From the sequence record NC_042081.1: a DNA stretch of 64,000 nt; one strand, given 5' to 3'. Below are positions 10,926-41,100 of the stretch, piece after piece. Every line of letters begins with the position of its first letter. Within the stretch, counting starts at the first letter, position 1. Below the pieces are notes generated by a model, which saw only the letters and a list, made by a program, of their open reading frames with translations, had not been told where the DNA came from and ran no database searches. The position numbers and the translations under genes are program-made.

Positions 10926-11327
10926 TCATGCTTTTGAAAGATCATATTTAATAGCTTCATCTTTCATAGGAGTTAATACAATAGTCACTTTTTCAAAACC
11001 ATGTATATCCCTACCATTATAAGAAATATCAATACTCTCCCAATCCTGGTTAACTACTTCAGCATGAAGAATATTTTTAATATTGATAGCATCTGTTTTA
11101 TCAAACCATTTAAAAACCTTTGGGTTAAATACAAGTTCGAAAGTAGTTTGATATGGATAGCTTTTCTGTTTAACAAGCCTACTAGATGCTAGTGATGTAT
11201 TCTCAATGTTTCGAATAACATCAATCATTGCTTTACGGATAGTAAGTAATTTACTTTTCAGAACCAAATCAATAAATGCTGGATCAGTTGTCATTACTTC
11301 TTTTACAGATGGAAATGTGATTTCCAT
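10926..11327 (-). CDS. Hypothetical early protein (133 aa)
   Basis: ORF track; GAGG RBS. Confidence 0.8.
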   Translation of the reverse strand: MEITFPSVKEVMTTDPAFIDLVLKSKLLTIRKAMIDVIRNIENTSLASSRLVKQKSYPYQTTFELVFNPKVFKWFDKTDAINIKNILHAEVVNQDWESIDISYNGRDIHGFEKVTIVLTPMKDEAIKYDLSKA

Positions 11328-11343
11328 AGCATCCTCTTATAGG

Positions 11344-11520
11344 TTAATTATTAAAAGATAAATCATAATCACTTTGTCTGCGATTCGGATTAACAGGATC
11401 AGGATATTTTCCAGTTTTGATAACTTCTTTTATAGCTCTAAAATCACGTTCTAGAAAATCTAGTTTTTTAACTAACTCTTTTTCTAATTCTTTATTGAGT
11501 AGTCTTCTTAATTTGCTCAT
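11344..11520 (-). CDS. Small ORF below the track cutoff (58 aa, MSKLRRLLNKELEKELVKK...)
   Basis: Manual translation; fills the gap between two genes; AAGAG RBS; helical heptads. Confidence 0.6.
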   Translation of the reverse strand: MSKLRRLLNKELEKELVKKLDFLERDFRAIKEVIKTGKYPDPVNPNRRQSDYDLSFNN

Positions 11521-11887
11521 CTACGTATACTCTTACAATGAACCAATTGATTAGGCCAAAACCTTTTGGTGTGATGGTAATGTCATCTTTATATCCATTT
11601 TTAGTGATTACATTACGTAATACTTTAATTGCTTCAGGTGGAATAAGATTAGCATTACCGGTAACACTATACTCGAAATAATAACCTACACCTGGTAAAT
11701 AACCTGATGCAATCTGGTTAGTACCTGTGATATTACTAACGTGTTGGAAGTCACTAAAAGCATTCTTGTAGAATAACAAAATATTAGGAATTACTTCATC
11801 CCTAATAGTAGAACTAGTAATGGCATCCGCCGATGGAAAATAAGGTACTAATTCATCTGTTACATTGGTGCTATTAATATCGGACAT
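11492..11887 (-). CDS. Hypothetical early protein (131 aa)
   Basis: GAGG RBS; early promoter upstream. Confidence 0.8.
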   Translation of the reverse strand: MSDINSTNVTDELVPYFPSADAITSSTIRDEVIPNILLFYKNAFSDFQHVSNITGTNQIASGYLPGVGYYFEYSVTGNANLIPPEAIKVLRNVITKNGYKDDITITPKGFGLINWFIVRVYVDEQIKKTTQ

Positions 11888-11933
11888 AATCTTTTCCTCA
11901 TTATAAAAGGATAAATATCTTTATGGTAATCCT

Positions 11934-11950
11934 GTAATATAGATTTAAAT
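11934..11950 (-). promoter_or_regulatory. Early (virion RNAP) promoter
   Basis: ATTTAAATCTATATTAC; contains the phiKZ early consensus TATATTAC. Confidence 0.75.
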
Positions 11951-11966
11951 TAATTTATAATGAATG

Positions 11967-12000
11967 ACATAAAGGAGCCCCTGGTGGGCTCCTTTAATGT
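11967..12000. terminator. Bidirectional terminator-like hairpin
   Basis: acat-aaaggagccc-ctggt-gggctccttt-a-atgt. Confidence 0.75.
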
Positions 12001-12007
12001 AATAGGT

Positions 12008-12150
12008 CCGACCCCTATCTAGAGGTCGGTAAGTAGCAAGGCACCGTAGTTGGGGCTCGTGTCGTTCCTGACGATACTTTAGTACCCCGGTTGATTTACG
12101 ACTGGATCACCCCCTTAAAGTGCAGTGCGTTTTACGCAAACTGCCTTGCT
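12008..12150 (-). ncRNA. Putative structured non-coding RNA (multi-branch; strand tentative)
   Basis: GC-rich non-coding stretch; 9-bp closing helix AGCAAGGCA/TGCCTTGCT, nested stems, an extra hairpin and an adjacent terminator. Confidence 0.55.
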
Positions 12151-12234
12151 CTATATCATTGCACTGTGCGTATTTTTATTCATTAGCTAATCTTATGACT
12201 TAAAGTTATCCACTATCCCTTAAGGAAAGATGCA

Positions 12235-15168
12235 ATGATAGATTCATTTAGGAGATTAATGGGCACGTTATCAATTACTGAGACTGATCAAGAAATTATT
12301 ATCAGTGGTTTTGATGGTGCGGCCTTTATTAGAGATATTAATAAGTATTGGAGGACTACTAAATTATCTACACAGTTATTCAATACAGTTAGTCGAAGTA
12401 GCGTTTCATTTTATAAATTCTTTGCTCCTGAAGTCTATTACATGCTAGAGGCGGTAAAGAATTATAGAAGTAGATATATCTCTATTAAAACAGTTAATGC
12501 TATTCGTGAAGCAATGCTTCAATATACCTGGCTAAAAAATACACGCCCAGTAGACCCTAATTCTGTTCCAGGTAGATTGAATTTCAAAATGTTAGATAAG
12601 TTGACATTCATACCTGACTATGAACAGAAAGCATATTTTGAAAACTATAACTACCGTATTGACCAATATGGTTTACGTGGTGATATCGTTGCTGGTCAAC
12701 CCGGTACTGGTAAAGCACAGCCATTAGATAGTCTTATAAAGATTCCTGGTGGCTGGAAAAAAATGGGTGATATAAAAGTTGGTGATCTAGTAACAAGTTC
12801 AACAGGGGAACCAACTGAAGTTATTGGTGTATATCCACAAGGTAAGAAACGTACCTATACATTTGAATTTAGTGATGGACGTAAAACTAAAGCATGTGGT
12901 GAACACCTATGGCGAGTATATTGTGAAGATTGGGTATTAGACAGTGATGGCTGGAAGATTATTTCTACAGATGAACTTAAAGATGCATTAAGTACAAATG
13001 TTACATCAAAGTACTATGTTCAACTTTGTAAATCAGAAACTAATCCAAATATTGATCTTCCAATCGATCCATACACTGTTGGTAAGACATTAGGTGAAAA
13101 TAAAATTAGATCAGAACAAACTGTATTTATTTCTAATGAATATCTACATGGATCAGATAGTCAAAGATTATCTTTATTGCAAGGTCTAATGGACACCTGT
13201 GGTGAAGTTGATAGTTCTGGTAAAATTAGTTTTACTAGTAATAGTTATACCTTAGTTGAACAAGTTCAATATCTAGTGCGATCATTAGGTGGTATTGCAA
13301 AAATCATCGATACAAAAGAGCATGATTATAAAGTAGATATTACTATTTCTACTCCATCGATATTGTTCCATTTACATGACGAAGCTAAGTATAATAAAGA
13401 ACTTTATCAGCATTTAGATGAGCTTAAGTTACAGATAACCAGTATAGTTGAATCTGATGAAGTAGAATGCCAATGTATTGCCGTGTCTGCACCTGATCAT
13501 CTTTATATCACTGATGACTTCATTGTCACTCATAATACTTTCATGACTATGGCTATTGCAGAAATGGTTGAGTCAGAGATAATTATAGTTGTATGTGAAA
13601 AGAAGTCTATTGAACTTGTATGGAAACCATCCATTATAGAGATGTATAAAGATAAACAAACAGTGTGGACAACTGCTGATGATAGACCTTATAATGGTCA
13701 AAGGATTCTTATATCTCATTATCAGGCACAAGATAAGATTATCGATATACTACGTAGTGGCATTCTTAAGAATAAGAAAATCACTGTCATTCTTGATGAA
13801 TCACACAACATGAATGATCCAAATTCTGCACAGTCTTTAAAATTCCAACAGATCTGTTTCATGACAGATTCAGACAATAGGCTATTAGCCTCTGGAACAC
13901 CTGTTAAAGCACTTGGATCAGAACTGGTGAGTGCCCTACGTGTTCTAGACGATCTATTCACTAAAGAAGTGGAAGAACGCTTTAAGAAGGCTTTTGGCAG
14001 GGATACTCAGAAAGGTCTAGATATTATCCAGCATCGTTTTGGTTTAATAGCTTACGTTATTGAGAAAAAAGATACTGATGTATTACCACCTAAAATTAAA
14101 TCATATCGTATCAAGATACCTAATGGATCACAATATACTCTTAATGCTATAAAACGTGACTGTGAAGCATTTATTAGAGAGCGCGTGAAGTTTTATGCTG
14201 CACGCAGGCCAGAGGATGAAAAGTATTGGGCTAAGTTGATGACAATACATGAGAATTCTCTGAAAACACCTGCACAAAGAGAAGGATTTGCACGTTATAA
14301 AAATCTGATTAAAATAATCCAGAAGAATCCTGATCCACGGTATATCGGTGAAGAGATTAAAGAATCTAACCTATATGAGAAAATGTTCATTGAACCAACA
14401 TTACCGCGTAATGAAATAGCTAATTTTAGAGATATCAAATCAGTTATAAAATACGTAATGTTAAAAATACAAGGTGAATGTTTAGGTAGAGTTCTAGGTG
14501 CTAAACGTATTCAGTGTCATGTTGATATGGTCCCATATATCGACTGGGTTGGTATTACCGAATCAACCATGAAGAAAACCATTACATTTACATCATTCGT
14601 TGAAGTTGTAGATGCAGTTGATAAATATACAAATAAACTAGGTATGAAATCAGCTGTTGTATATGGTAAAACTAATGATAATCTACCTCAGATAGTTTAT
14701 AAATTTGAGAAAGACCCTAAATTAAATCCATTGGTAGCTACATATGCTTCCCTTTCAACAGCGGTCCGTATGACGATGGCTGATACTATGGTGACAATTA
14801 ATTCACCGTTTAGGCATTACATTCTAGAACAAGCTATTGCTCGAATTTACCGTAAAGGTCAGGATTCACAAACAGTCGTATATCAATGTACTCTCGATAC
14901 AGAAGATGAACCGAATATCTCAACAAGGTCAGATGACATTCTAAAATGGAGTCAGGCAATGGTTGAAGCTATTATGGGTATTAAATCTCCATTTGAGATC
15001 ACAGAGTCATTAGAAAGTTATGTTGATAAAAATAATAATTTTGATGAAAATAAAATCATTTATCAGATGCTAAAAGAATCATTTGAGAAGTATGATATCG
15101 CAATTGATTTTAATGACTTTGATACACGTATGTATAAACCATATCAGCCCGCATATATGCGGTTTTAA
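12235..15168 (+). CDS. SF2 (SNF2/DExH-like) helicase, phiKZ gp203-like, intein-containing precursor (703 aa after splicing)
   Basis: Split Walker A GQPGTGK|T, motif II ILDESHN, motif III ASGTP, motif VI QAIARIYRKGQ. Confidence 0.92.
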   Translation: MIDSFRRLMGTLSITETDQEIIISGFDGAAFIRDINKYWRTTKLSTQLFNTVSRSSVSFYKFFAPEVYYMLEAVKNYRSRYISIKTVNAIREAMLQYTWLKNTRPVDPNSVPGRLNFKMLDKLTFIPDYEQKAYFENYNYRIDQYGLRGDIVAGQPGTGKAQPLDSLIKIPGGWKKMGDIKVGDLVTSSTGEPTEVIGVYPQGKKRTYTFEFSDGRKTKACGEHLWRVYCEDWVLDSDGWKIISTDELKDALSTNVTSKYYVQLCKSETNPNIDLPIDPYTVGKTLGENKIRSEQTVFISNEYLHGSDSQRLSLLQGLMDTCGEVDSSGKISFTSNSYTLVEQVQYLVRSLGGIAKIIDTKEHDYKVDITISTPSILFHLHDEAKYNKELYQHLDELKLQITSIVESDEVECQCIAVSAPDHLYITDDFIVTHNTFMTMAIAEMVESEIIIVVCEKKSIELVWKPSIIEMYKDKQTVWTTADDRPYNGQRILISHYQAQDKIIDILRSGILKNKKITVILDESHNMNDPNSAQSLKFQQICFMTDSDNRLLASGTPVKALGSELVSALRVLDDLFTKEVEERFKKAFGRDTQKGLDIIQHRFGLIAYVIEKKDTDVLPPKIKSYRIKIPNGSQYTLNAIKRDCEAFIRERVKFYAARRPEDEKYWAKLMTIHENSLKTPAQREGFARYKNLIKIIQKNPDPRYIGEEIKESNLYEKMFIEPTLPRNEIANFRDIKSVIKYVMLKIQGECLGRVLGAKRIQCHVDMVPYIDWVGITESTMKKTITFTSFVEVVDAVDKYTNKLGMKSAVVYGKTNDNLPQIVYKFEKDPKLNPLVATYASLSTAVRMTMADTMVTINSPFRHYILEQAIARIYRKGQDSQTVVYQCTLDTEDEPNISTRSDDILKWSQAMVEAIMGIKSPFEITESLESYVDKNNNFDENKIIYQMLKESFEKYDIAIDFNDFDTRMYKPYQPAYMRF
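12715..13536 (+). mobile_element. Class 3 intein (274 aa) with degenerate LAGLIDADG endonuclease
   Basis: Starts AQPLDS; block B CGEHLW; block F CQCIAV; ends IVTHN followed by +1 Thr; WCT triplet present. Confidence 0.92.
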
Positions 15169-15179
15169 AGGAGACAGAA

Positions 15180-15650
15180 ATGTCTGATCCACATTCATCT
15201 AATACTGGTGAAGATCTTATTCTTGGGCCTGAAGCCACCAGTGAAGAAATGTATAATGCGATTTTAAGGTGGGTTGACAAAGTAACAACCATCCTAGAAT
15301 CTGGTGGTGGCCCTGGTCCAGGTCCTAGTACTGGTTTAAAACCAATTCTATTTCAAACTGGTACATTAAACCCAGGAGATGTAGTTACTTATGATCTTTC
15401 CAAAGTTATTACTTCTATGGGTGATTATACTCTGGCTACAGCCATCGTTGATCTCAAGATTATCGACCCTGAAACTACTAGTCCTACTAGTGGTAAGCTT
15501 ATTAGCGCTTCTGCTAGTATTGGTTGGGATCTCGATTCATCTACAGGGATTTTAAATATCCGTGGGTATAGCCTGTCTGTACCAATCACTTATTATATTC
15601 GAGTTGACTCACCTATTAAGACGGCTGATATTCCCGTGTATACCCCGTAA
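15180..15650 (+). CDS. Putative virion structural protein (156 aa, gp202-like)
   Basis: GGAG RBS; Gly-Pro linker then a beta-sandwich-like domain; co-oriented with the helicase. Confidence 0.75.
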   Translation: MSDPHSSNTGEDLILGPEATSEEMYNAILRWVDKVTTILESGGGPGPGPSTGLKPILFQTGTLNPGDVVTYDLSKVITSMGDYTLATAIVDLKIIDPETTSPTSGKLISASASIGWDLDSSTGILNIRGYSLSVPITYYIRVDSPIKTADIPVYTP

Positions 15651-15660
15651 GGAGTGAGAA

Positions 15661-17610
15661 ATGCCTTCTATTGTCCCGTCGCAAGTGCCGGGTCCTGTGG
15701 CACTAAACTCTAAAGTTAAATTTAACTTTAGTTCAGATATTCAGAAGGTGTATTATACAGTGAGCCCGGAGTTACCTCCGGTGCTCTCTGAATACATTGC
15801 TTATGATGGTGACCCTGCAACAGGTGGTAGTCCATTTATTGCTGTTGTGCAAGATGGCACTGGTAATGTTCTTTATGATTGTAGTTTTCCAAAATTCTAT
15901 AATTTAAACTATGATACTTACCAAATTCCGGCTAATACAACAAACCCTCAAGATCTATGGGGATGGGTAAGATATTTTTATAATGCTATTGGGTTTATTA
16001 GGAATGGTAGTAAGTACGAATCAACTGGAAAGAAATTCTTAGTAATCACAGATAGTAATCCTAGTGAACCTTATTCAGTCCTCAATACGTCAGGTAATGG
16101 TTTTAAAAAGATACTAGATACGGCTGCTCGTGTACAAGATTCTACCTATGATGTTTATTACCCAGAAATGATGGGTGGCACAGTAGACCTTACTTTAACA
16201 GATCTTAATAAGTATTATGCATGTATTCTATTTTCTACTAAAGATCATAATACTGGCGCATTAACTCCTGAAAGAGTGAGTCAGGCGACTATCGATAATC
16301 TAGCTACTTGGCGTAAATCGGGTAATGGTATCTTTGTTATAACTGATTCTGCTTCAAGAGATTACACTAATATTGAAGATGCTAAAGAAAATAATGGTAG
16401 TTTTGCATTTACCGCTAATAGACTAGCCTTTAATTTTGGTTCTTATTTCTCTGGTGTTGTTGATAGGTCAGATGTTCAATATACTGTAAATCAGATGCTA
16501 AGCTGGTCACCAAAAGCTGCATCATCTGGTTTGTTTACAGGTATGAATAAATCTATTGGTAATGGTCAAGTAACTGACTTTGTTATCAAAGGTGATTCAA
16601 GTGAAAGTGAGATTAAGCTTGTTACTTTCCCAGCGTATAACAAAGAAGATATTCCTGAATTTACCTTCGATCATACTGGCGAGTACATTTACAATTTTCT
16701 TTGTACGACATCTGAAAATCCTAATAAACCGTATGCTATTTCATTTAGATTCCAAGTTGGTGTAGATGATGGTATCTTTGTTGCACGTGATAATGGCCAA
16801 GCTATTGATACTACTCAGATACTAACAGCTAAGCGTTATTTTGATCTTAATCTAGGCTACTCAAATGGTACTGACCATCAGGATTATCTAGGCGATATTC
16901 AAATAAATGGCTATTTAGTTGGATCATTCTTATTTAGTCAGGGCATTACTCAGTGGGATCTGATAACTCATGGATCAACTCTTTTAATCCATGATAATGA
17001 TCAGATACGTATTAACGTACGTGTACCTTATACTTACACAATGCAGCATCAAGTGGTACTTAGTTCAAAACCTGCTTCTCTTTATAATGAAGCATCCCTT
17101 ATAGGTACAATGGCATGGGATGATTATAAAGGGATAAGTAAAGCTAAAATTTATGAATATATTAATCTTAGCATGACCAAGTATATGTATCGTGTAGCGA
17201 ATGCATATAAGAATAACATTAATATAAAACCAATAGTATTGACTGCATTACGCCGTACATTCCTTGGTGAGACATTAAATACAGCTAATGTATATGTTTA
17301 TGATAATAACTCCACATGGGGTAAACTATCACAACGTGTCCAGAACGGACGACATGGTGATATTGTTATCTTTGCAGATACTTCTAAAGTTGTCCAGTAT
17401 GATGAACTGGCTTCAACACCTGGCTGGTATGTAATGAAAGATCCAGGATTAGCTGATGTAACAGTAGCTAAACTAGTTCCATTCTTTGGAAATAACCGAG
17501 CTATTAAAAATAGGTTAAAGACTGGTGACATTCTTGATGAGACCACTGGTCAACCAATTTCTTTCCATGCTAATTGGAAAATAGAAAATGATAAACTTGT
17601 AAAAGTTTAA
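15661..17610 (+). CDS. Putative virion structural protein (649 aa, gp201-like)
   Basis: AGGAG RBS; YDCSFPKFYN motif recalled from jumbo-phage virion proteins. Confidence 0.75.
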   Translation: MPSIVPSQVPGPVALNSKVKFNFSSDIQKVYYTVSPELPPVLSEYIAYDGDPATGGSPFIAVVQDGTGNVLYDCSFPKFYNLNYDTYQIPANTTNPQDLWGWVRYFYNAIGFIRNGSKYESTGKKFLVITDSNPSEPYSVLNTSGNGFKKILDTAARVQDSTYDVYYPEMMGGTVDLTLTDLNKYYACILFSTKDHNTGALTPERVSQATIDNLATWRKSGNGIFVITDSASRDYTNIEDAKENNGSFAFTANRLAFNFGSYFSGVVDRSDVQYTVNQMLSWSPKAASSGLFTGMNKSIGNGQVTDFVIKGDSSESEIKLVTFPAYNKEDIPEFTFDHTGEYIYNFLCTTSENPNKPYAISFRFQVGVDDGIFVARDNGQAIDTTQILTAKRYFDLNLGYSNGTDHQDYLGDIQINGYLVGSFLFSQGITQWDLITHGSTLLIHDNDQIRINVRVPYTYTMQHQVVLSSKPASLYNEASLIGTMAWDDYKGISKAKIYEYINLSMTKYMYRVANAYKNNINIKPIVLTALRRTFLGETLNTANVYVYDNNSTWGKLSQRVQNGRHGDIVIFADTSKVVQYDELASTPGWYVMKDPGLADVTVAKLVPFFGNNRAIKNRLKTGDILDETTGQPISFHANWKIENDKLVKV

Positions 17611-27304: not shown

Positions 27305-27610
27305 TCAATAAATGAAACCACCAATGTAAAGTGACACTACTACATCGGCAACCCGAGGGTCTTGTGAATATTTAGATTTGACTAGTTTAATAAGTTCGGC
27401 TCGATTTTTAATGAAGCCTAGTTTCTTACTATCAATTTCCTCAGCTTCAATTAGGAAGTCATTTAACTTCTTCTTACTACCCAGTACATTAATCACCATT
27501 TGATCAATAACTGCATTAGTGTTTGATAGTTTAGTTAACTCTTGTTCAAAAACTTCCTTACGTCCTTCTGATCCAATTAGAGCTAGACCGATCTTTTTAA
27601 GTAGAGACAT
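27305..27610 (-). CDS. Hypothetical protein (101 aa, gp183-like)
   Basis: ORF track; AGG RBS. Confidence 0.8.
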   Translation of the reverse strand: MSLLKKIGLALIGSEGRKEVFEQELTKLSNTNAVIDQMVINVLGSKKKLNDFLIEAEEIDSKKLGFIKNRAELIKLVKSKYSQDPRVADVVVSLYIGGFIY

Positions 27611-27668
27611 GTTAATTACCTATTACATTGGTTTAAGAATGGTTACAATAAATAACTATTCCAAGTAT

Positions 27669-36432
<8,764 letters not shown>

Positions 36433-36507
36433 ATTAAACTCCATTGACGATTAGTAAAGTATCATATCGTTGTTTAACTTAGTATTACCAAAATAGGAAA
36501 ATAGAAA

Positions 36508-38160
36508 ATGAAGAAGGCATTAGTTCCTTTTAATATTTCTTTACTTATTCCCACTAAAGAACAATTAAAGTTCTTAGGTCAAGTAAAGAGTCATGAGATA
36601 TTTGAAGGTTTAGGTGGTAACTTTCATGAAGATGGTTTGTTCTCTGTTTCCATTTTTGGAAGAGTTGGATCAACTGATCGTGAGAGTTTATTTGGATATA
36701 TTCATTTAGGTTTAGAACTTATCCATCCAGCTGTATATCGAAACTTAATTAAATTAAAAGCTTTCTATGAAGAAATTATTCTTGGTAAGGCATTTGCAGT
36801 ATTTGACGAATCTATTAAAGATTTTATCCGCGCCGATGAACTAACTGGTAAAACTGGTTATACATTCTTTTTTGATAACTGGAAACGAATTGACTTTGGG
36901 TCCACTAAGTCAGGGGTTCGGCTATCAAGGTTACAATTAATCGAAAAATATAAAGATAACTGTATTTTTAAAGACATGCTTGTAACACCAGCCGCTTATC
37001 GTGATGCAGAGATTGATGAGAATAATCGTGTTGAGATGGATGAGATCAATGAACACTATAGGTATCTATTAAATCAGTCGTTTGGTGTACCTGATAGCTT
37101 TGGACCAAATGATGACTTGAGTATCTATGATCGCAAACGAGTAGCAATGCAAAACACCGTATTAGCTATTTATGAACATTATGAACGACTGCTATCCGGT
37201 AAACGTGGATACATTCAATCTAAATGGGCATCCCGTCGTATTGCCAATGGTACACGTAACGTCATTAGTTCGCTAGATACTAATGCTGCTGATCTTGATT
37301 CACCTAATCGACCAACATTCAAAGATGCCGTAGTTGGCTTACATCAAGCAGCTCGTTCAGTTGCACCGCGTACAATCTTTGCACTAAGGCAAGGTGTAGT
37401 TGGTGAAGTGTTTGATACAGTTACTAACACTGTACAGCTCATCAATAAGAAAACACTACGTTTAGAATGGGTCGATATCTCTAACGAAGATATGGATTTA
37501 TGGGGAACTCCTGAAGGGCAAGAACAAATCATCAATGAGTTAGATGTCATTGAAAAACGTTCACGTGCAATTGAAATTGCTGATCATTATCTAGCCCTTA
37601 TTTACGTTGATGATAAACAGAATTTTAAAATATTCCGCAACATCGATGAGTTACCTACTAATCTAAATAAGAAATTTGTTAGACCTATTACTTATGCCGA
37701 ATTAGTTTACCTTAGTGGATTAAGTATGTGGCGAACAAACTCAGCGTTTGTTACACGATATCCTGTAGAAAACTACAATAGCTCTATCCCCTGTAAGATG
37801 TATGTTAAAACAACCGTAGTGGGTGAATTACGTTATCCGTTAAATGATCAATGGGAACGTGATGATACGTTGGAACCAGCCTTAGAATTCCCTGTGTTTG
37901 AATTAAATAAACCAGCCCAGTGGCATGACTCAGTATCCATCTCTCCTTCTATTCTCGCGCCATTGGGGGCGGATTTCGACGGGGACACTGTATCATTTAA
38001 CGCAGTTTATTCAGAGGAAGCTATCGCTGAAACAGATGCTTTCTTTAAGAAACGTATTGCATATATACATGCCGATGGTCGACTGGCATTTAGTGTTGGT
38101 GTCCATACACTCAATTTAACTCTTCGGTACATGACTGGGGAACCCAAACAAAGGGATTAA
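36508..38160 (+). CDS. gp180: Virion RNA polymerase beta-prime N-terminal subunit (phiKZ gp180)
   Basis: GLFSVSIFG, LSGKRG and catalytic LGADFDGD motif. Confidence 0.96.
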   Translation: MKKALVPFNISLLIPTKEQLKFLGQVKSHEIFEGLGGNFHEDGLFSVSIFGRVGSTDRESLFGYIHLGLELIHPAVYRNLIKLKAFYEEIILGKAFAVFDESIKDFIRADELTGKTGYTFFFDNWKRIDFGSTKSGVRLSRLQLIEKYKDNCIFKDMLVTPAAYRDAEIDENNRVEMDEINEHYRYLLNQSFGVPDSFGPNDDLSIYDRKRVAMQNTVLAIYEHYERLLSGKRGYIQSKWASRRIANGTRNVISSLDTNAADLDSPNRPTFKDAVVGLHQAARSVAPRTIFALRQGVVGEVFDTVTNTVQLINKKTLRLEWVDISNEDMDLWGTPEGQEQIINELDVIEKRSRAIEIADHYLALIYVDDKQNFKIFRNIDELPTNLNKKFVRPITYAELVYLSGLSMWRTNSAFVTRYPVENYNSSIPCKMYVKTTVVGELRYPLNDQWERDDTLEPALEFPVFELNKPAQWHDSVSISPSILAPLGADFDGDTVSFNAVYSEEAIAETDAFFKKRIAYIHADGRLAFSVGVHTLNLTLRYMTGEPKQRD

Positions 38161-38162
38161 TC

Positions 38163-41100
38163 ATGCGCTTAAATATTACACAGTTTCTGAAAAATTATAG
38201 TGTACGCGAATATGCTAAACTTCAGTCACCTAAGTTGCATGCTCTAAATAAACTTGATCTACCTTTCGAATCCATTTATCAGTTCTTCGATGGTAATAAT
38301 GCAGTAATGGGTCCTAGTCAAACAGACCCATTATTCTCCAAACATCAAGGTAAAGTATATATTGAGCATGTTACTGATATGCTTACATTTGAAGGTAATC
38401 CACGTAGGACTTCAAATATCCCAGCAACAATGATTCAAGAGTTTCGCCGCCAGAACCGTTTCTTTAAACCTTTACGCAGTGATACCGGTTTTAAATTATC
38501 AAACCAGAACATTCTGGTAATGAATTATAATTTAATTAACCCTCAATGGAATTATATGGCTTCTTATAAAGCTACATGGTTCCGTTGGTCAAATGACATG
38601 CGTACATTCTGGAGTGGCGTAGCGGCTGCATGTGAACGTTTTCCTGGTTGGAACCAGTTCATTGATGTACACTTACCTGAGTTAGTTCCACCTCCTTCTT
38701 CTTTTAATAAACTACGAGGGGGTTTAACTCAAGATCTAGCTAATCAATTCAATACACCTGATATTCTAAATATATTTGATTTAGTTCGCTGGGTTTCTGA
38801 TGATCGTGAAAGTTCTTTCATGAATGTCATCGATGCTAAGTATTACGGTAACATTAATCTTTTATTCCGTGTACAAAGTTCATTCTTTGTTATTAACTTA
38901 GGGATGCTTGATCAATGGCGTCGTGATCCAGAAATTAAAGATGATAAAGGTTATGATACCCAGCAAATAGCTAGGCGCCTTATTTCACTAGTATCAGCGA
39001 TGGTTGAATATAACCAAGGTAATACTTCATTAATTAAAGAAGATACGCCTATCTTTAATGAAGATATTATTGTTGATGAAGAAACTCCGGTTAGTTATGA
39101 AGAAGGTGAAGCAGAAGAGGTTGAGGATGTTGAGTCTAATAACGTTGAAGAAGAAGTAACTGAAGTTGATGTTATTGATGATGTTCAATTTGACCCAACC
39201 AACTTAACTAACTTAATTGATATTGGCGCAATTGAGGTAACATATACCCCACCACCAGAAAGTGATCTTGAGGTAACAAAGCTTATCATTGAAAAAGATC
39301 CACTGGAATCTTCACCTTCTCGCCAAATTAAAGAAGAGAAGGAACTCATTGTAACAGATGTACCAGAAGATGAGTTATTCATCAATACTGAAGTTGATGA
39401 AGAAGATAAACTAATCGATGCCATTAGAGCTAAAGCATACGACATGTATCGCGTGAATATGATTTCTGCGAATACATTCGAGCAAGCTCAAGAAGATTCG
39501 ATTATGTATCGTCGTCTACCTGATCCATTTACCGATCCTAATGATGAATCAGTAGAACCTATGACGATCGCTGAGGCGATGGAATATCATCCAGATGATC
39601 TTAAGATTCCAGAAGACACCACTTTTGAAGATAAGCCAACCATTGTTGATAAATCAATGTTGGGTAGTAAGTTAAAAGCCATCCAACGCAAATACAACAA
39701 GGTCTTATTAAAGAAAGATATTTTAAACAGTGTGTTATCTGTTCAGAAACAAGGCGTATCAGTAACTAATTACAAAATTGAAACTGTACGCGATTCTGGT
39801 AACCATTACCAAATCCACAAAGTTACATTAAAGCCTATTCGTGGTAGAAGTTCACAAGTAATGTTCCGTATCCCTGTCATTGATAATGACGGTAGGTTCA
39901 TGTCTAATGGGGTAACATATCGCCAACGTTTACAACGTGCTGATATTCCAATTCGTAAAGTTAATCCACGTAAAGTTGCATTGACCTCTTATTATAATAA
40001 GACCTTTGTGACCAGATCTGAACGTGCTGAAAACAACTTTGATAATTGGTTAATCAGAGCGATTACCAACCGTGCATTAGATGGAAGTGATATGTCTGTA
40101 CATTCAGTTACCTATGCTGAATTAGATCAATCCAACTATGTTCTACCAAGGGTGTACACTACTTTAGGAACAGCTTTTAAAGGCTTCCATAATCACCGTA
40201 ATGTGTTCTATTTTAATTTCAAAGATCGTAATGAATTCTTTGCAAAACAAGGATTACATATCGAAGATTATGAAACTGATGATTTGATAATGGTGGGGTT
40301 CAATGGCACTGATGCTATCTTGTTAGATAAGAATTCCATCTTTTACATGAAAACAGGTAATGAGCTAGAACCTATTGGTACCATTACAGATATACTTGGC
40401 TTAGATCTAACCAAAGCGCCGTTAGAAGCTATTCTAATGTCAATTGGTGGTAAAGAGCTACCATTAGGTTTCATTTTAGCATATCACCATGGCTTAAACA
40501 ATCTACTTAAGAAGTTGAATGTTAATTATCAGCGTCATCAGCGTGGTACCAGGATTGTTGTCAATAGTACGGATTATACATTAGCGTTCGCTGATGAGAT
40601 CCTAGTATTTGATCGAGCTGATTATAAAGCAATGCTTGTATTAAGTGGACTCAAACGTTATCATAAATCACTGCGGCGTTATTCTGTTTATGATTTCAAT
40701 AAACGAGATGTTTACTTCAGGGTTCTTGAAGAAGCTGGATTAAGTAATAGATTTACACGTGATATTGATACACTCTTCTCAGCATGGGTCGATCCAATCA
40801 CTGAGGGTCTACTCAAGGAGATGGGTGAACCAACTACTTTTGAAGGATTGCTTTATCGGTCTGTCGAGTTATTAACGAACGACTGGAGTCCAGCAGAAGT
40901 AGATGGTGCATATATGCGCTATCGTGGTTATGAGCGCATGGCAGGGGCTATTTTTAATGAACTCAATAGAGCGGTACGTGTATTTAATATGCGTAATGGT
41001 GGGTCAGTGCAAACTGTCGAGTTAGATCCACACGTGATCTGGCGCAAGATTGTACAAGATCCGACAGTAGCCACTATTGAAGATTCTAACCCCATTGCAA

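Follow-up and report, generated by a model that had tools for sequence, protein, structure and literature searches.

The DNA analysed here, a window of 64,000 nucleotides that is 100% identical to the genome of Pseudomonas phage SL2 (Phikzvirus SL2, NC_042081/MF805716), encodes an orthologue of the phiKZ virion helicase gp203 whose Walker A motif is interrupted by a predicted class 3 intein. We consider it highly probable that the element as a whole is to be read as a class 3 intein that keeps a dead homing endonuclease as a structural scaffold, and that reached SL2 recently by recombination with a phage of the type represented by L009 and L010, two contigs that carry sister alleles of the intein gene. 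The coordinates of the gene, the intein and the tract surrounding it are collected in Table 1.

The insertion point is defined by comparison with the uninterrupted gene. Aligned to phiKZ gp203 (703 residues), the product of the SL2 open reading frame (ORF) is 93% identical, with a single gap of exactly 274 residues between K160 and T435 of the SL2 protein, which is where the first-pass annotation, a reading of the sequence without database searches, had placed an intein. The junctions read GQPGTGK/AQPLDS...FIVTHN/TFMT in SL2, and the phiKZ counterpart is GKPGTGK/TFMT; the insert splits the GxGKT of Walker A between Lys and Thr, and the motif becomes contiguous in the SL2 helicase only once residues 161-434 are removed. 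Pfam recognizes SNF2-rel_dom (28.9 bits) and Helicase_C (25.6 bits) in the 977-residue ORF, both over the cutoff, and this ATPase core, the helicase C-terminal domain and the Walker A motif obtained without the insert identify the SL2 protein as a helicase of the SNF2/SF2 type. A third match over the cutoff, to LAGLIDADG_3 (E 9e-7), lies in the middle of the ORF and covers intein residues 150-206.

The host protein appears to travel with the phage genome. In the phiKZ record gp203 is listed as a structural protein, and a transposon study describes it as a head-packaged helicase that undergoes proteolytic processing and pellets together with the genome (bioRxiv 10.1101/2025.11.23.690004), lending support to the earlier suggestion that the helicase is probably carried in the virion. 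The same study reports phiKZ gp203 to be non-essential, as transposon insertions in it are tolerated. The first-pass annotation had also claimed that ATPase activity requires splicing, since the residue following the intein is the P-loop Thr. For the Walker A motif this stands, Thr+1 being the Walker A Thr of gp203; the gene itself is reported to be dispensable in phiKZ, and while an intact Walker A of SL2 gp203 needs splicing, plaque formation in the laboratory probably does not. Database entries call the SL2 gp203-like gene "hypothetical" or "DarB-like antirestriction"; none of its records annotates the intein. The RefSeq coding sequence (CDS) of SL2, which bears the latter name, starts at 12259 (969 residues); the upstream ATG at 12235 (977 residues) is the start in the phiKZ orthologue and in two sister alleles.

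Class 3 inteins are defined by a non-nucleophilic first residue, by Trp, Cys and Thr at positions B:12, F:4 and G:5 (the WCT triplet), and by Thr or Ser at +1, and their splicing strictly depends on the F:4 Cys and proceeds by way of a thiol-labile branched intermediate at block F (Tori et al. 2010, PMC2807308); most of them occupy the P-loops of DnaB, RecG, SNF2 and terminase proteins (PMC2807308). The SL2 insert has each of these features, together with a HINT fold that ends in His-Asn. Its first residue is Ala1 (GCA, 12715..12717), as had been proposed from the sequence and is now fixed by the gap boundary against intein-less phiKZ gp203, and Thr is at +1. The triplet had been read in the motifs EHLW (residues 63-66), CQCIAV (252-257) and VTHN (271-274), and all three lie at those places and in register with class 3 inteins of solved structure. 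A sequence search of the Protein Data Bank (PDB) gave five significant matches, all of them inteins of helicase P-loops: the gp41-1 intein (6RIZ, E 3e-13; 6QAZ) and the class 3 DnaBi1 inteins of Mycobacterium smegmatis (Msm; 6BS8/6OWN, E 3e-11) and M. chimaera (6RIX/6RIY). In these alignments His64-x-Trp66 of SL2 corresponds to His65-x-Trp67 of Msm DnaBi1, Cys254 to Cys118, Tyr264 to Tyr128 and the terminal Thr-His-Asn to the same three residues.

An exhaustive, profile-free search against cluster representatives matched the insert to 14,947 of them at E<=1e-3 and to 1,781 at E<=1e-30; together with the PDB matches, this indicates that the motif pattern in SL2 is not due to chance. Residue frequencies were counted over 183 inteins taken from the 150 best-matching proteins. 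His B:10, Trp B:12, Cys F:4 and Asn G:7 are each present in all 183 and Thr G:5 in 182; the +1 residue is Thr in 151, Ser in 31 and Cys in one, the -1 residue is Lys in 148, and the first residue is Ala (116), Pro (22), Ser (11) or another, mostly non-nucleophilic, residue. On its sequence, the SL2 insert is thus classified as an ordinary member of a large family of class 3 (WCT-type) inteins that target P-loops. One short member of the family, P0145, has Asn in place of Thr at G:5. In a tblastn search of a phage collection, the family has a single site within SL2. It is found in 669 phage records overall, including 299 mycobacteriophage records, and many of the annotations make no mention of an intein. 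Vibrio, Klebsiella and Salmonella jumbo phages also contain it, and EL-like phages carry up to four copies per genome, in features annotated as RNA polymerase beta subunit, terminase and helicase.

An AlphaFold2 model of the SL2 intein, built on a 43-sequence alignment, has a predicted local distance difference test (pLDDT) score of 93 and a predicted template-modelling score (pTM) of 0.91, and combines a HINT fold with a single LAGLIDADG lobe. With this model as query, Foldseek retrieved PI-SceI and TliVMA (E about 1e-12), PI-PfuI, and class 3 DnaB inteins (template-modelling score 0.78-0.82 over the target, E about 1e-9). By homology to the inteins of mycobacteriophage MP Bethlehem (MP-Be) DnaB, Deinococcus radiodurans (Dra) Snf2 and Msm DnaBi1, splicing would begin with Cys254 (F:4), Ala1 being incapable of an N-S shift: assisted by His64 and Trp66 of block B, Cys254 would attack the Lys160-Ala1 peptide bond, giving a thioester branched (block F) intermediate. 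The N-extein would then be handed to the hydroxyl of Thr+1, and cyclization of Asn274 would free the intein. Finally, an O-N shift would remake GTGK-T, so that the ATPase site is restored.

Judging from the residues that it has lost, the endonuclease of SL2 is almost certainly inactive as a nuclease. The first-pass annotation had noted eroded LAGLIDADG blocks in an intein of only 274 residues, and the damage proves to be worse than that: relative to inteins at the same site, about 59 residues are gone right after LAGLIDADG helix 1 and 12 more further on, and the two deletions remove the entire beta core of lobe 1. In the model, helix 119-128 runs straight into the second LAGLIDADG helix (148-162), which is followed by one beta-beta-alpha-beta-beta unit, so that the two-lobe saddle of an active monomeric LAGLIDADG endonuclease is missing. 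Nor does each helix contribute its acidic residue, as LGDG has become LGEN, with Glu128 lacking the Gly that should follow it, and DTDG has become DTCG (LLQGLMDTCG, residues 154-163), with Cys162 in place of the catalytic Asp. The element is not a mini-intein either, since about 130 residues with the LAGLIDADG_3 match persist between the splicing halves.

The same architecture recurs in the family. The median intein length is 348 residues, and 23 of the 183 inteins are shorter than 300. Asp or Glu is present at the motif 1 position in 145 of 160 long members; the motif 2 Asp is retained in 151 of the 160 long forms versus nine of the 23 short ones, as expected if nuclease function goes once lobe 1 has been lost. 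When 19 short forms were aligned, the same lobe 1 region was found to be missing from 17, with larger deletions in P0003 and P0145, and the boundaries vary. Short forms are scattered over a maximum-likelihood tree, and well-supported branches force at least four changes, which rules out a single ancient deletion behind all of the forms of about 275 residues. On the tree, inteins of about 270-290 residues that have lost lobe 1 but kept lobe 2 have thus arisen at least four times independently, a recurrent route of decay in this family. SL2 itself falls in a well-supported clade of four, with short P0145 as its immediate sister and with full-length PS119XW and P0009; its deletion is therefore derived. 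We found no nearer relative with an intact endonuclease; the best matches beyond the SL2-like cluster are about 57% identical or less.

Although the nuclease is predicted to be dead, its remnant does not evolve freely. Clustering at 90% identity groups the SL2 protein with three further complete alleles (about 97% identical), found in a contig of a P. aeruginosa assembly, a Third Party Annotation (TPA) record and a Logan contig. Each of these contains the 274-residue intein with 11-12 substitutions, none at a catalytic residue, and the reading frames of the four alleles (synonymous divergence, dS, about 0.08-0.10) are open, free of stops and frameshifts, with all catalytic residues kept. In comparison with the sister alleles, the ratio of nonsynonymous to synonymous divergence (dN/dS, or omega) is 0.18-0.22 for the whole intein, 0.17 for the endonuclease remnant (six nonsynonymous and nine synonymous changes; binomial P = 0.002 against neutrality) and 0.09-0.13 for the exteins. 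These values argue that the helicase and the whole intein, remnant included, are still constrained, though the counts are small. The earlier description of the endonuclease as decaying is therefore borne out for its motifs and deletions and not as free decay, given an omega of about 0.17 against the donor-like lineage. In the simplest reading, the remnant is most likely a structural scaffold needed for the splicing domain to fold properly.

The intein is polymorphic among close relatives, as the first-pass annotation had thought possible. In a megablast search that recovered 47 phiKZ-like records, the insert is present in the two SL2 records only; the other 45, among them phiKZ, KTN4 and OMKO1, give a two-piece match spanning 2,112 nt, the intein-less allele. 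At the same site of the same gene, inteins are found in PhiPA3 (gp233), PA1C, PS119XW, BRkr, phiLBG22 and phiHQ, in the Serratia phages 2050HW, Haymo and BUCT660, and in other jumbo phages. Those of PhiPA3, PS119XW and BRkr, checked by alignment, are about 345 residues long and 53-56% identical to that of SL2; LGVILGDG and GLMDTDG are the motifs of these longer inteins. In the BRkr intein (L006:2501-3541) the catalytic residue of motif 1 is replaced by Ala (LGAGG), pointing to an independent inactivation of a full-length endonuclease. The first residue of the PS119XW intein (L004:2492-3526) is Ser, with the WCT triplet kept, a minority class 3-like configuration whose mechanism was left open by Tori et al. 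(PMC2807308). In public sequencing runs, both intein junctions are covered by contigs, one of 42.5 kb and others from soil and biofilm metagenomes, confirming that the intein-bearing allele circulates independently of SL2; no intein-less joints were seen in the public runs with this allele.

The DNA around the intein records how it arrived. Across the 64 kb, SL2 is 97.6-99.8% identical to phiKZ in every BLAST segment apart from the intein tract, which is the most diverged part of the whole window. Inside the tract, the identity of SL2 to L009/L010 is 94-100%, against 72-92% to phiKZ; in the flanks compared, the relation is reversed, with 99.6-100% identity to phiKZ and 68-96% to L009/L010. Likewise, dS between SL2 and L009 is 0.04-0.09 within the tract and 0.75 just past it. 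From this reciprocal mosaic it follows that SL2 has a phiKZ-type backbone with an intein acquired from a diverged phiKZ-like lineage, and the sequences indicate a recent lateral import with co-conversion of the flanks from a donor lineage of the L009/L010 type. The exchange would have been a recombination with a diverged phiKZ-like phage, in which extein DNA came along on both sides, about 0.5 kb upstream and 1.2 kb downstream. As the donor-like alleles share the truncated endonuclease, the nuclease was crippled already at the time of transfer. We prefer ordinary recombination in a mixed infection over homing driven by a break, possibly by a nuclease acting in trans.

The first-pass annotation further proposed that Cys-dependent splicing could make the helicase conditional on redox or metals, a reasonable idea that is at present speculation by analogy. 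In its strong form, oxidation or zinc would block Cys254 and hold the packaged helicase off until it meets reducing, metal-poor conditions, as in Msm DnaBi1, which belongs to the same class and sits in the same kind of site, a helicase P-loop. There, H2O2 inhibits reversibly, with the catalytic Cys118 (F:4) caught in a disulfide with Cys48, and so does zinc, bound by Cys118, the next backbone position and Tyr128 (PMC6195587, PMC7360933). SL2 keeps the equivalents of the zinc ligands (Cys254, the backbone of Ile255, and Tyr264) and has additional cysteines near the active-site blocks, Cys61 (B:7) and Cys252 (F:2), positions at which Cys occurs in 81 and 36 of the 183 relatives, respectively. 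However, the disulfide partner Cys48 is Thr47 in SL2, the position of Cys252 varies among Ala, Thr and Cys across the family, and inhibition in vitro is possible for any thiol nucleophile and is no proof of a regulatory role. We regard such a switch as unlikely, if the best of the alternatives.

True homing into SL2 would require that the remnant, or a nuclease in trans, was still effective, cutting the empty GTGK/T site during co-infection, with repair from the intein allele and asymmetric co-conversion. The intein does lie in the most diverged tract of the 64 kb, and the lengths to either side of it (533 bp and 1,166 bp) are typical of break repair; the event is recent, given a backbone that elsewhere hardly differs from phiKZ, and purifying selection acts on the remnant. 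Intact endonucleases of the same family occupy the same site in the P. aeruginosa jumbo phages PhiPA3 and PS119XW, and phages offer a reported precedent for homing in trans with a defunct endonuclease, T4 mobE with I-TevIII (PMC2790892). Against this, both SL2 and the donor-like alleles lack the DNA-binding beta-sheet core of lobe 1 and have Cys in place of the motif 2 Asp, the depletion of this Asp among short forms points to loss of function after deletion, and milder diverged patches without an intein occur elsewhere in the window, so that plain recombination suffices. Homing is accordingly judged quite improbable. With a similarly small chance, the one-lobe remnant may still serve mobility, as a DNA-binding or dimerizing module or with an intact endonuclease in trans, or may join Cys61, Cys252 and Cys254 in gating the injected helicase by redox or zinc; that it may be functional at all is suggested by the purifying selection, by an architecture that arose at least four times, and by a recent move with a tract resembling break repair.

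It is very unlikely that the insert fails to splice and permanently breaks the P-loop, a helicase-dead gp203 being tolerated in a dispensable gene: the reported non-essentiality of phiKZ gp203 and the heavy rearrangement of the intein by two deletions would allow this, but the catalytic residues are intact in four diverged alleles without stop or frameshift, purifying selection acts on both the intein (omega about 0.2) and the flanking exteins (about 0.1), the HINT fold is predicted confidently, and many family members have the same short architecture.

Several points weigh against our preferred reading of a splicing class 3 intein with a dead endonuclease imported by ordinary recombination. 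Splicing at the gp203 site, in SL2 or in other jumbo phages, is inferred from homology; as gp203 tolerates insertions, a non-splicing insert would not be lethal, and the argument that the intein must splice is weakened. Among the Pfam HINT models only Hom_end_hint matches, at E 0.02 and below the cutoff, so that it is the PDB sequence matches and the fold matches that support homology of the splicing domain. The omega estimates stand on only 15-29 substitutions. Lastly, endonuclease-driven homing leaves a tract centred on the intein, as seen here, which is hard to reconcile with a dead endonuclease if neither ordinary recombination nor a trans-acting nuclease produced it.

Table 1. Features of the SL2 gp203-like gene, its intein and the surrounding tract (window coordinates)
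Feature	Position	Strand	Remarks
Precursor ORF, phiKZ gp203 orthologue, SNF2/SF2 virion helicase	12235..15168	+	977 aa, one uninterrupted frame
N-extein	12235..12714	+	160 aa, closes with the first part of Walker A, GQPGTGK; from phiKZ gp203 alignment
Intein, Ala1 to Asn274	12715..13536	+	274 aa; from alignment to phiKZ gp203, intein homology and model
N-terminal half of HINT splicing domain, including block B	12715..13029	+	Intein residues 1-105; from Msm DnaBi1 alignment and model (beta strands pLDDT >90)
Block B, Cys61 (B:7)	12895..12897	+	
Block B, His64 (B:10)	12904..12906	+	
Block B, Trp66 (B:12)	12910..12912	+	
Homing-endonuclease remnant	13030..13419	+	Intein residues about 106-235; orphan LAGLIDADG helix 1 and one complete alpha-beta-beta-alpha-beta-beta lobe (lobe 2)
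LAGLIDADG motif 1 remnant, DPYTVGKTLGENK	13066..13104	+	Residues 118-130; catalytic position Glu128 (13096..13098), next Gly replaced by Asn
Deletion of about 59 aa relative to same-site inteins	near 13117	+	Directly after motif 1; from alignment
LAGLIDADG motif 2, LLQGLMDTCGEVD	13174..13212	+	Catalytic Asp replaced by Cys162 (13198..13200)
C-terminal HINT part, blocks F and G	13420..13536	+	From Msm DnaBi1 alignment and family counts
Blocks F/G, Cys252	13468..13470	+	
Blocks F/G, Cys254 (F:4), predicted nucleophile	13474..13476	+	
Blocks F/G, Tyr264		+	
Block G, Thr272	13528..13530	+	
Block G, His273		+	
Block G, Asn274	13534..13536	+	
C-extein	13537..15168	+	543 aa and stop; Thr+1 (13537..13539) is the Walker A Thr, followed by SNF2 and Helicase_C cores
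Predicted imported recombination (co-conversion) tract	12182..14702	.	533 bp left, 822 bp intein, 1,166 bp right; from identity switch against phiKZ and L009/L010; dS 0.04-0.10 inside, 0.75 beyond the tract
Comparison with phiKZ, before the tract	11000..12181		5 mismatches in 1,182 bp; 99.6% identity
Comparison with phiKZ, left of intein	12182..12714		78 mismatches in 533 bp; about 85% identity
Comparison with phiKZ, right of intein	13537..14702		About 222 mismatches in 1,166 bp; about 81% identity
Comparison with phiKZ, after the tract	14703..16000		1 mismatch in 1,298 bp; 99.9% identity

Elsewhere in the window, which is otherwise 99-100% identical to phiKZ, identity is lower (92-97%) in two patches, 27500..30500 and 35000..37975, which may be further recombination imports. 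The phiKZ gene PHIKZ179 (L007:28660-29733), an HNH_3 endonuclease (Pfam E 7e-9) located between the virion RNA polymerase genes gp180 and gp178, is absent from SL2 (window 36508..38163, with the insertion/deletion at about 37975). The gp180-like ORF of SL2 is longer (550 residues) and adjoins the gp178-like ORF, and in the 1 kb left of the insertion/deletion SL2 is only about 95% identical to phiKZ. This locus is thus the second in the window at which a homing-endonuclease gene is polymorphic for presence and has a diverged flank.

In Serratia phage 2050HW the gp203 orthologue (L005:2024-4655) is annotated as two CDS because one base shifts the frame within lobe 1 of the intein endonuclease. 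In the sister phage Haymo (L011:2093-4654) the gene is a base shorter and reads as one ORF. A natural split intein in 2050HW is ruled out by this single extra base, and the two-CDS state is best read from the sequences as a frameshift, either a sequencing error or a recent pseudogene.

Class 3 P-loop inteins are well described, and the SL2 intein itself therefore amounts to a correction of annotation. A phage origin has reportedly been proposed for the class 3 inteins of helicase P-loops. Neither the intein nor the helicase is mentioned in the SL2 genome paper (PMC5707522), and our literature search found no description of inteins in gp203 orthologues. What the analysis adds is the sharply bounded import of 2.5 kb into a near-isogenic backbone, with a donor-like lineage sampled, and the recurrent one-lobe state of decay. 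SL2 and phiKZ, with flanks 99-100% identical, form a near-isogenic pair that differs by the intein and its foreign tract, a natural experiment suited to two questions: whether a class 3 intein with a half-deleted endonuclease is still able to spread when phages co-infect, and whether splicing of a head-packaged, DNA-associated helicase is conditional.

Like the inteins of MP Bethlehem DnaB, D. radiodurans Snf2 and the DnaBi1 proteins of M. smegmatis and M. chimaera (PDB 6BS8, 6RIX), the SL2 intein has a non-nucleophilic first residue, His-x-Trp in block B and Cys at F:4; with class 3 inteins of helicase P-loops it also has in common the Thr-His-Asn end, Thr+1, insertion at GxGK/T and the HINT fold. 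It differs from the solved class 3 inteins in its host, a jumbo-phage virion SNF2 helicase, in an identity of about 15-17% over structural alignments, and in the absence of the DnaBi1 disulfide partner. DnaBi1 is a mini-intein and the MP-Be DnaB intein is full-length (341 residues); the SL2 intein, by contrast, keeps a LAGLIDADG remnant of one lobe. The inteins of PhiPA3 gp233, PA1C, PS119XW and BRkr (50-56% identity) and of Serratia phages 2050HW and Haymo (about 43%) share the gene, site, family and WCT triplet with SL2; these same-site orthologues have both lobes and usually both Asp residues in about 345 residues, whereas SL2 lacks about 71 residues and has Glu and Cys instead.

A degenerate intein endonuclease represents the stage of the homing cycle that follows loss of the nuclease. 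As in the Pyrococcus horikoshii VMA intein (PMC8966425) and in mini-inteins that arose by endonuclease loss, the endonuclease of SL2 is inactivated while splicing is kept, as predicted for SL2. Unlike in degenerate intein endonucleases, a whole lobe has been excised and the other kept under selection, in an element that is polymorphic and recently transferred. The inheritance of about 1-2 kb of foreign flank with a mobile element between co-infecting relatives resembles trans-homing and marker exclusion in the T-even phages (T4 mobE with I-TevIII; SegB); for SL2 the mechanism of import is deduced from the tract that it left.

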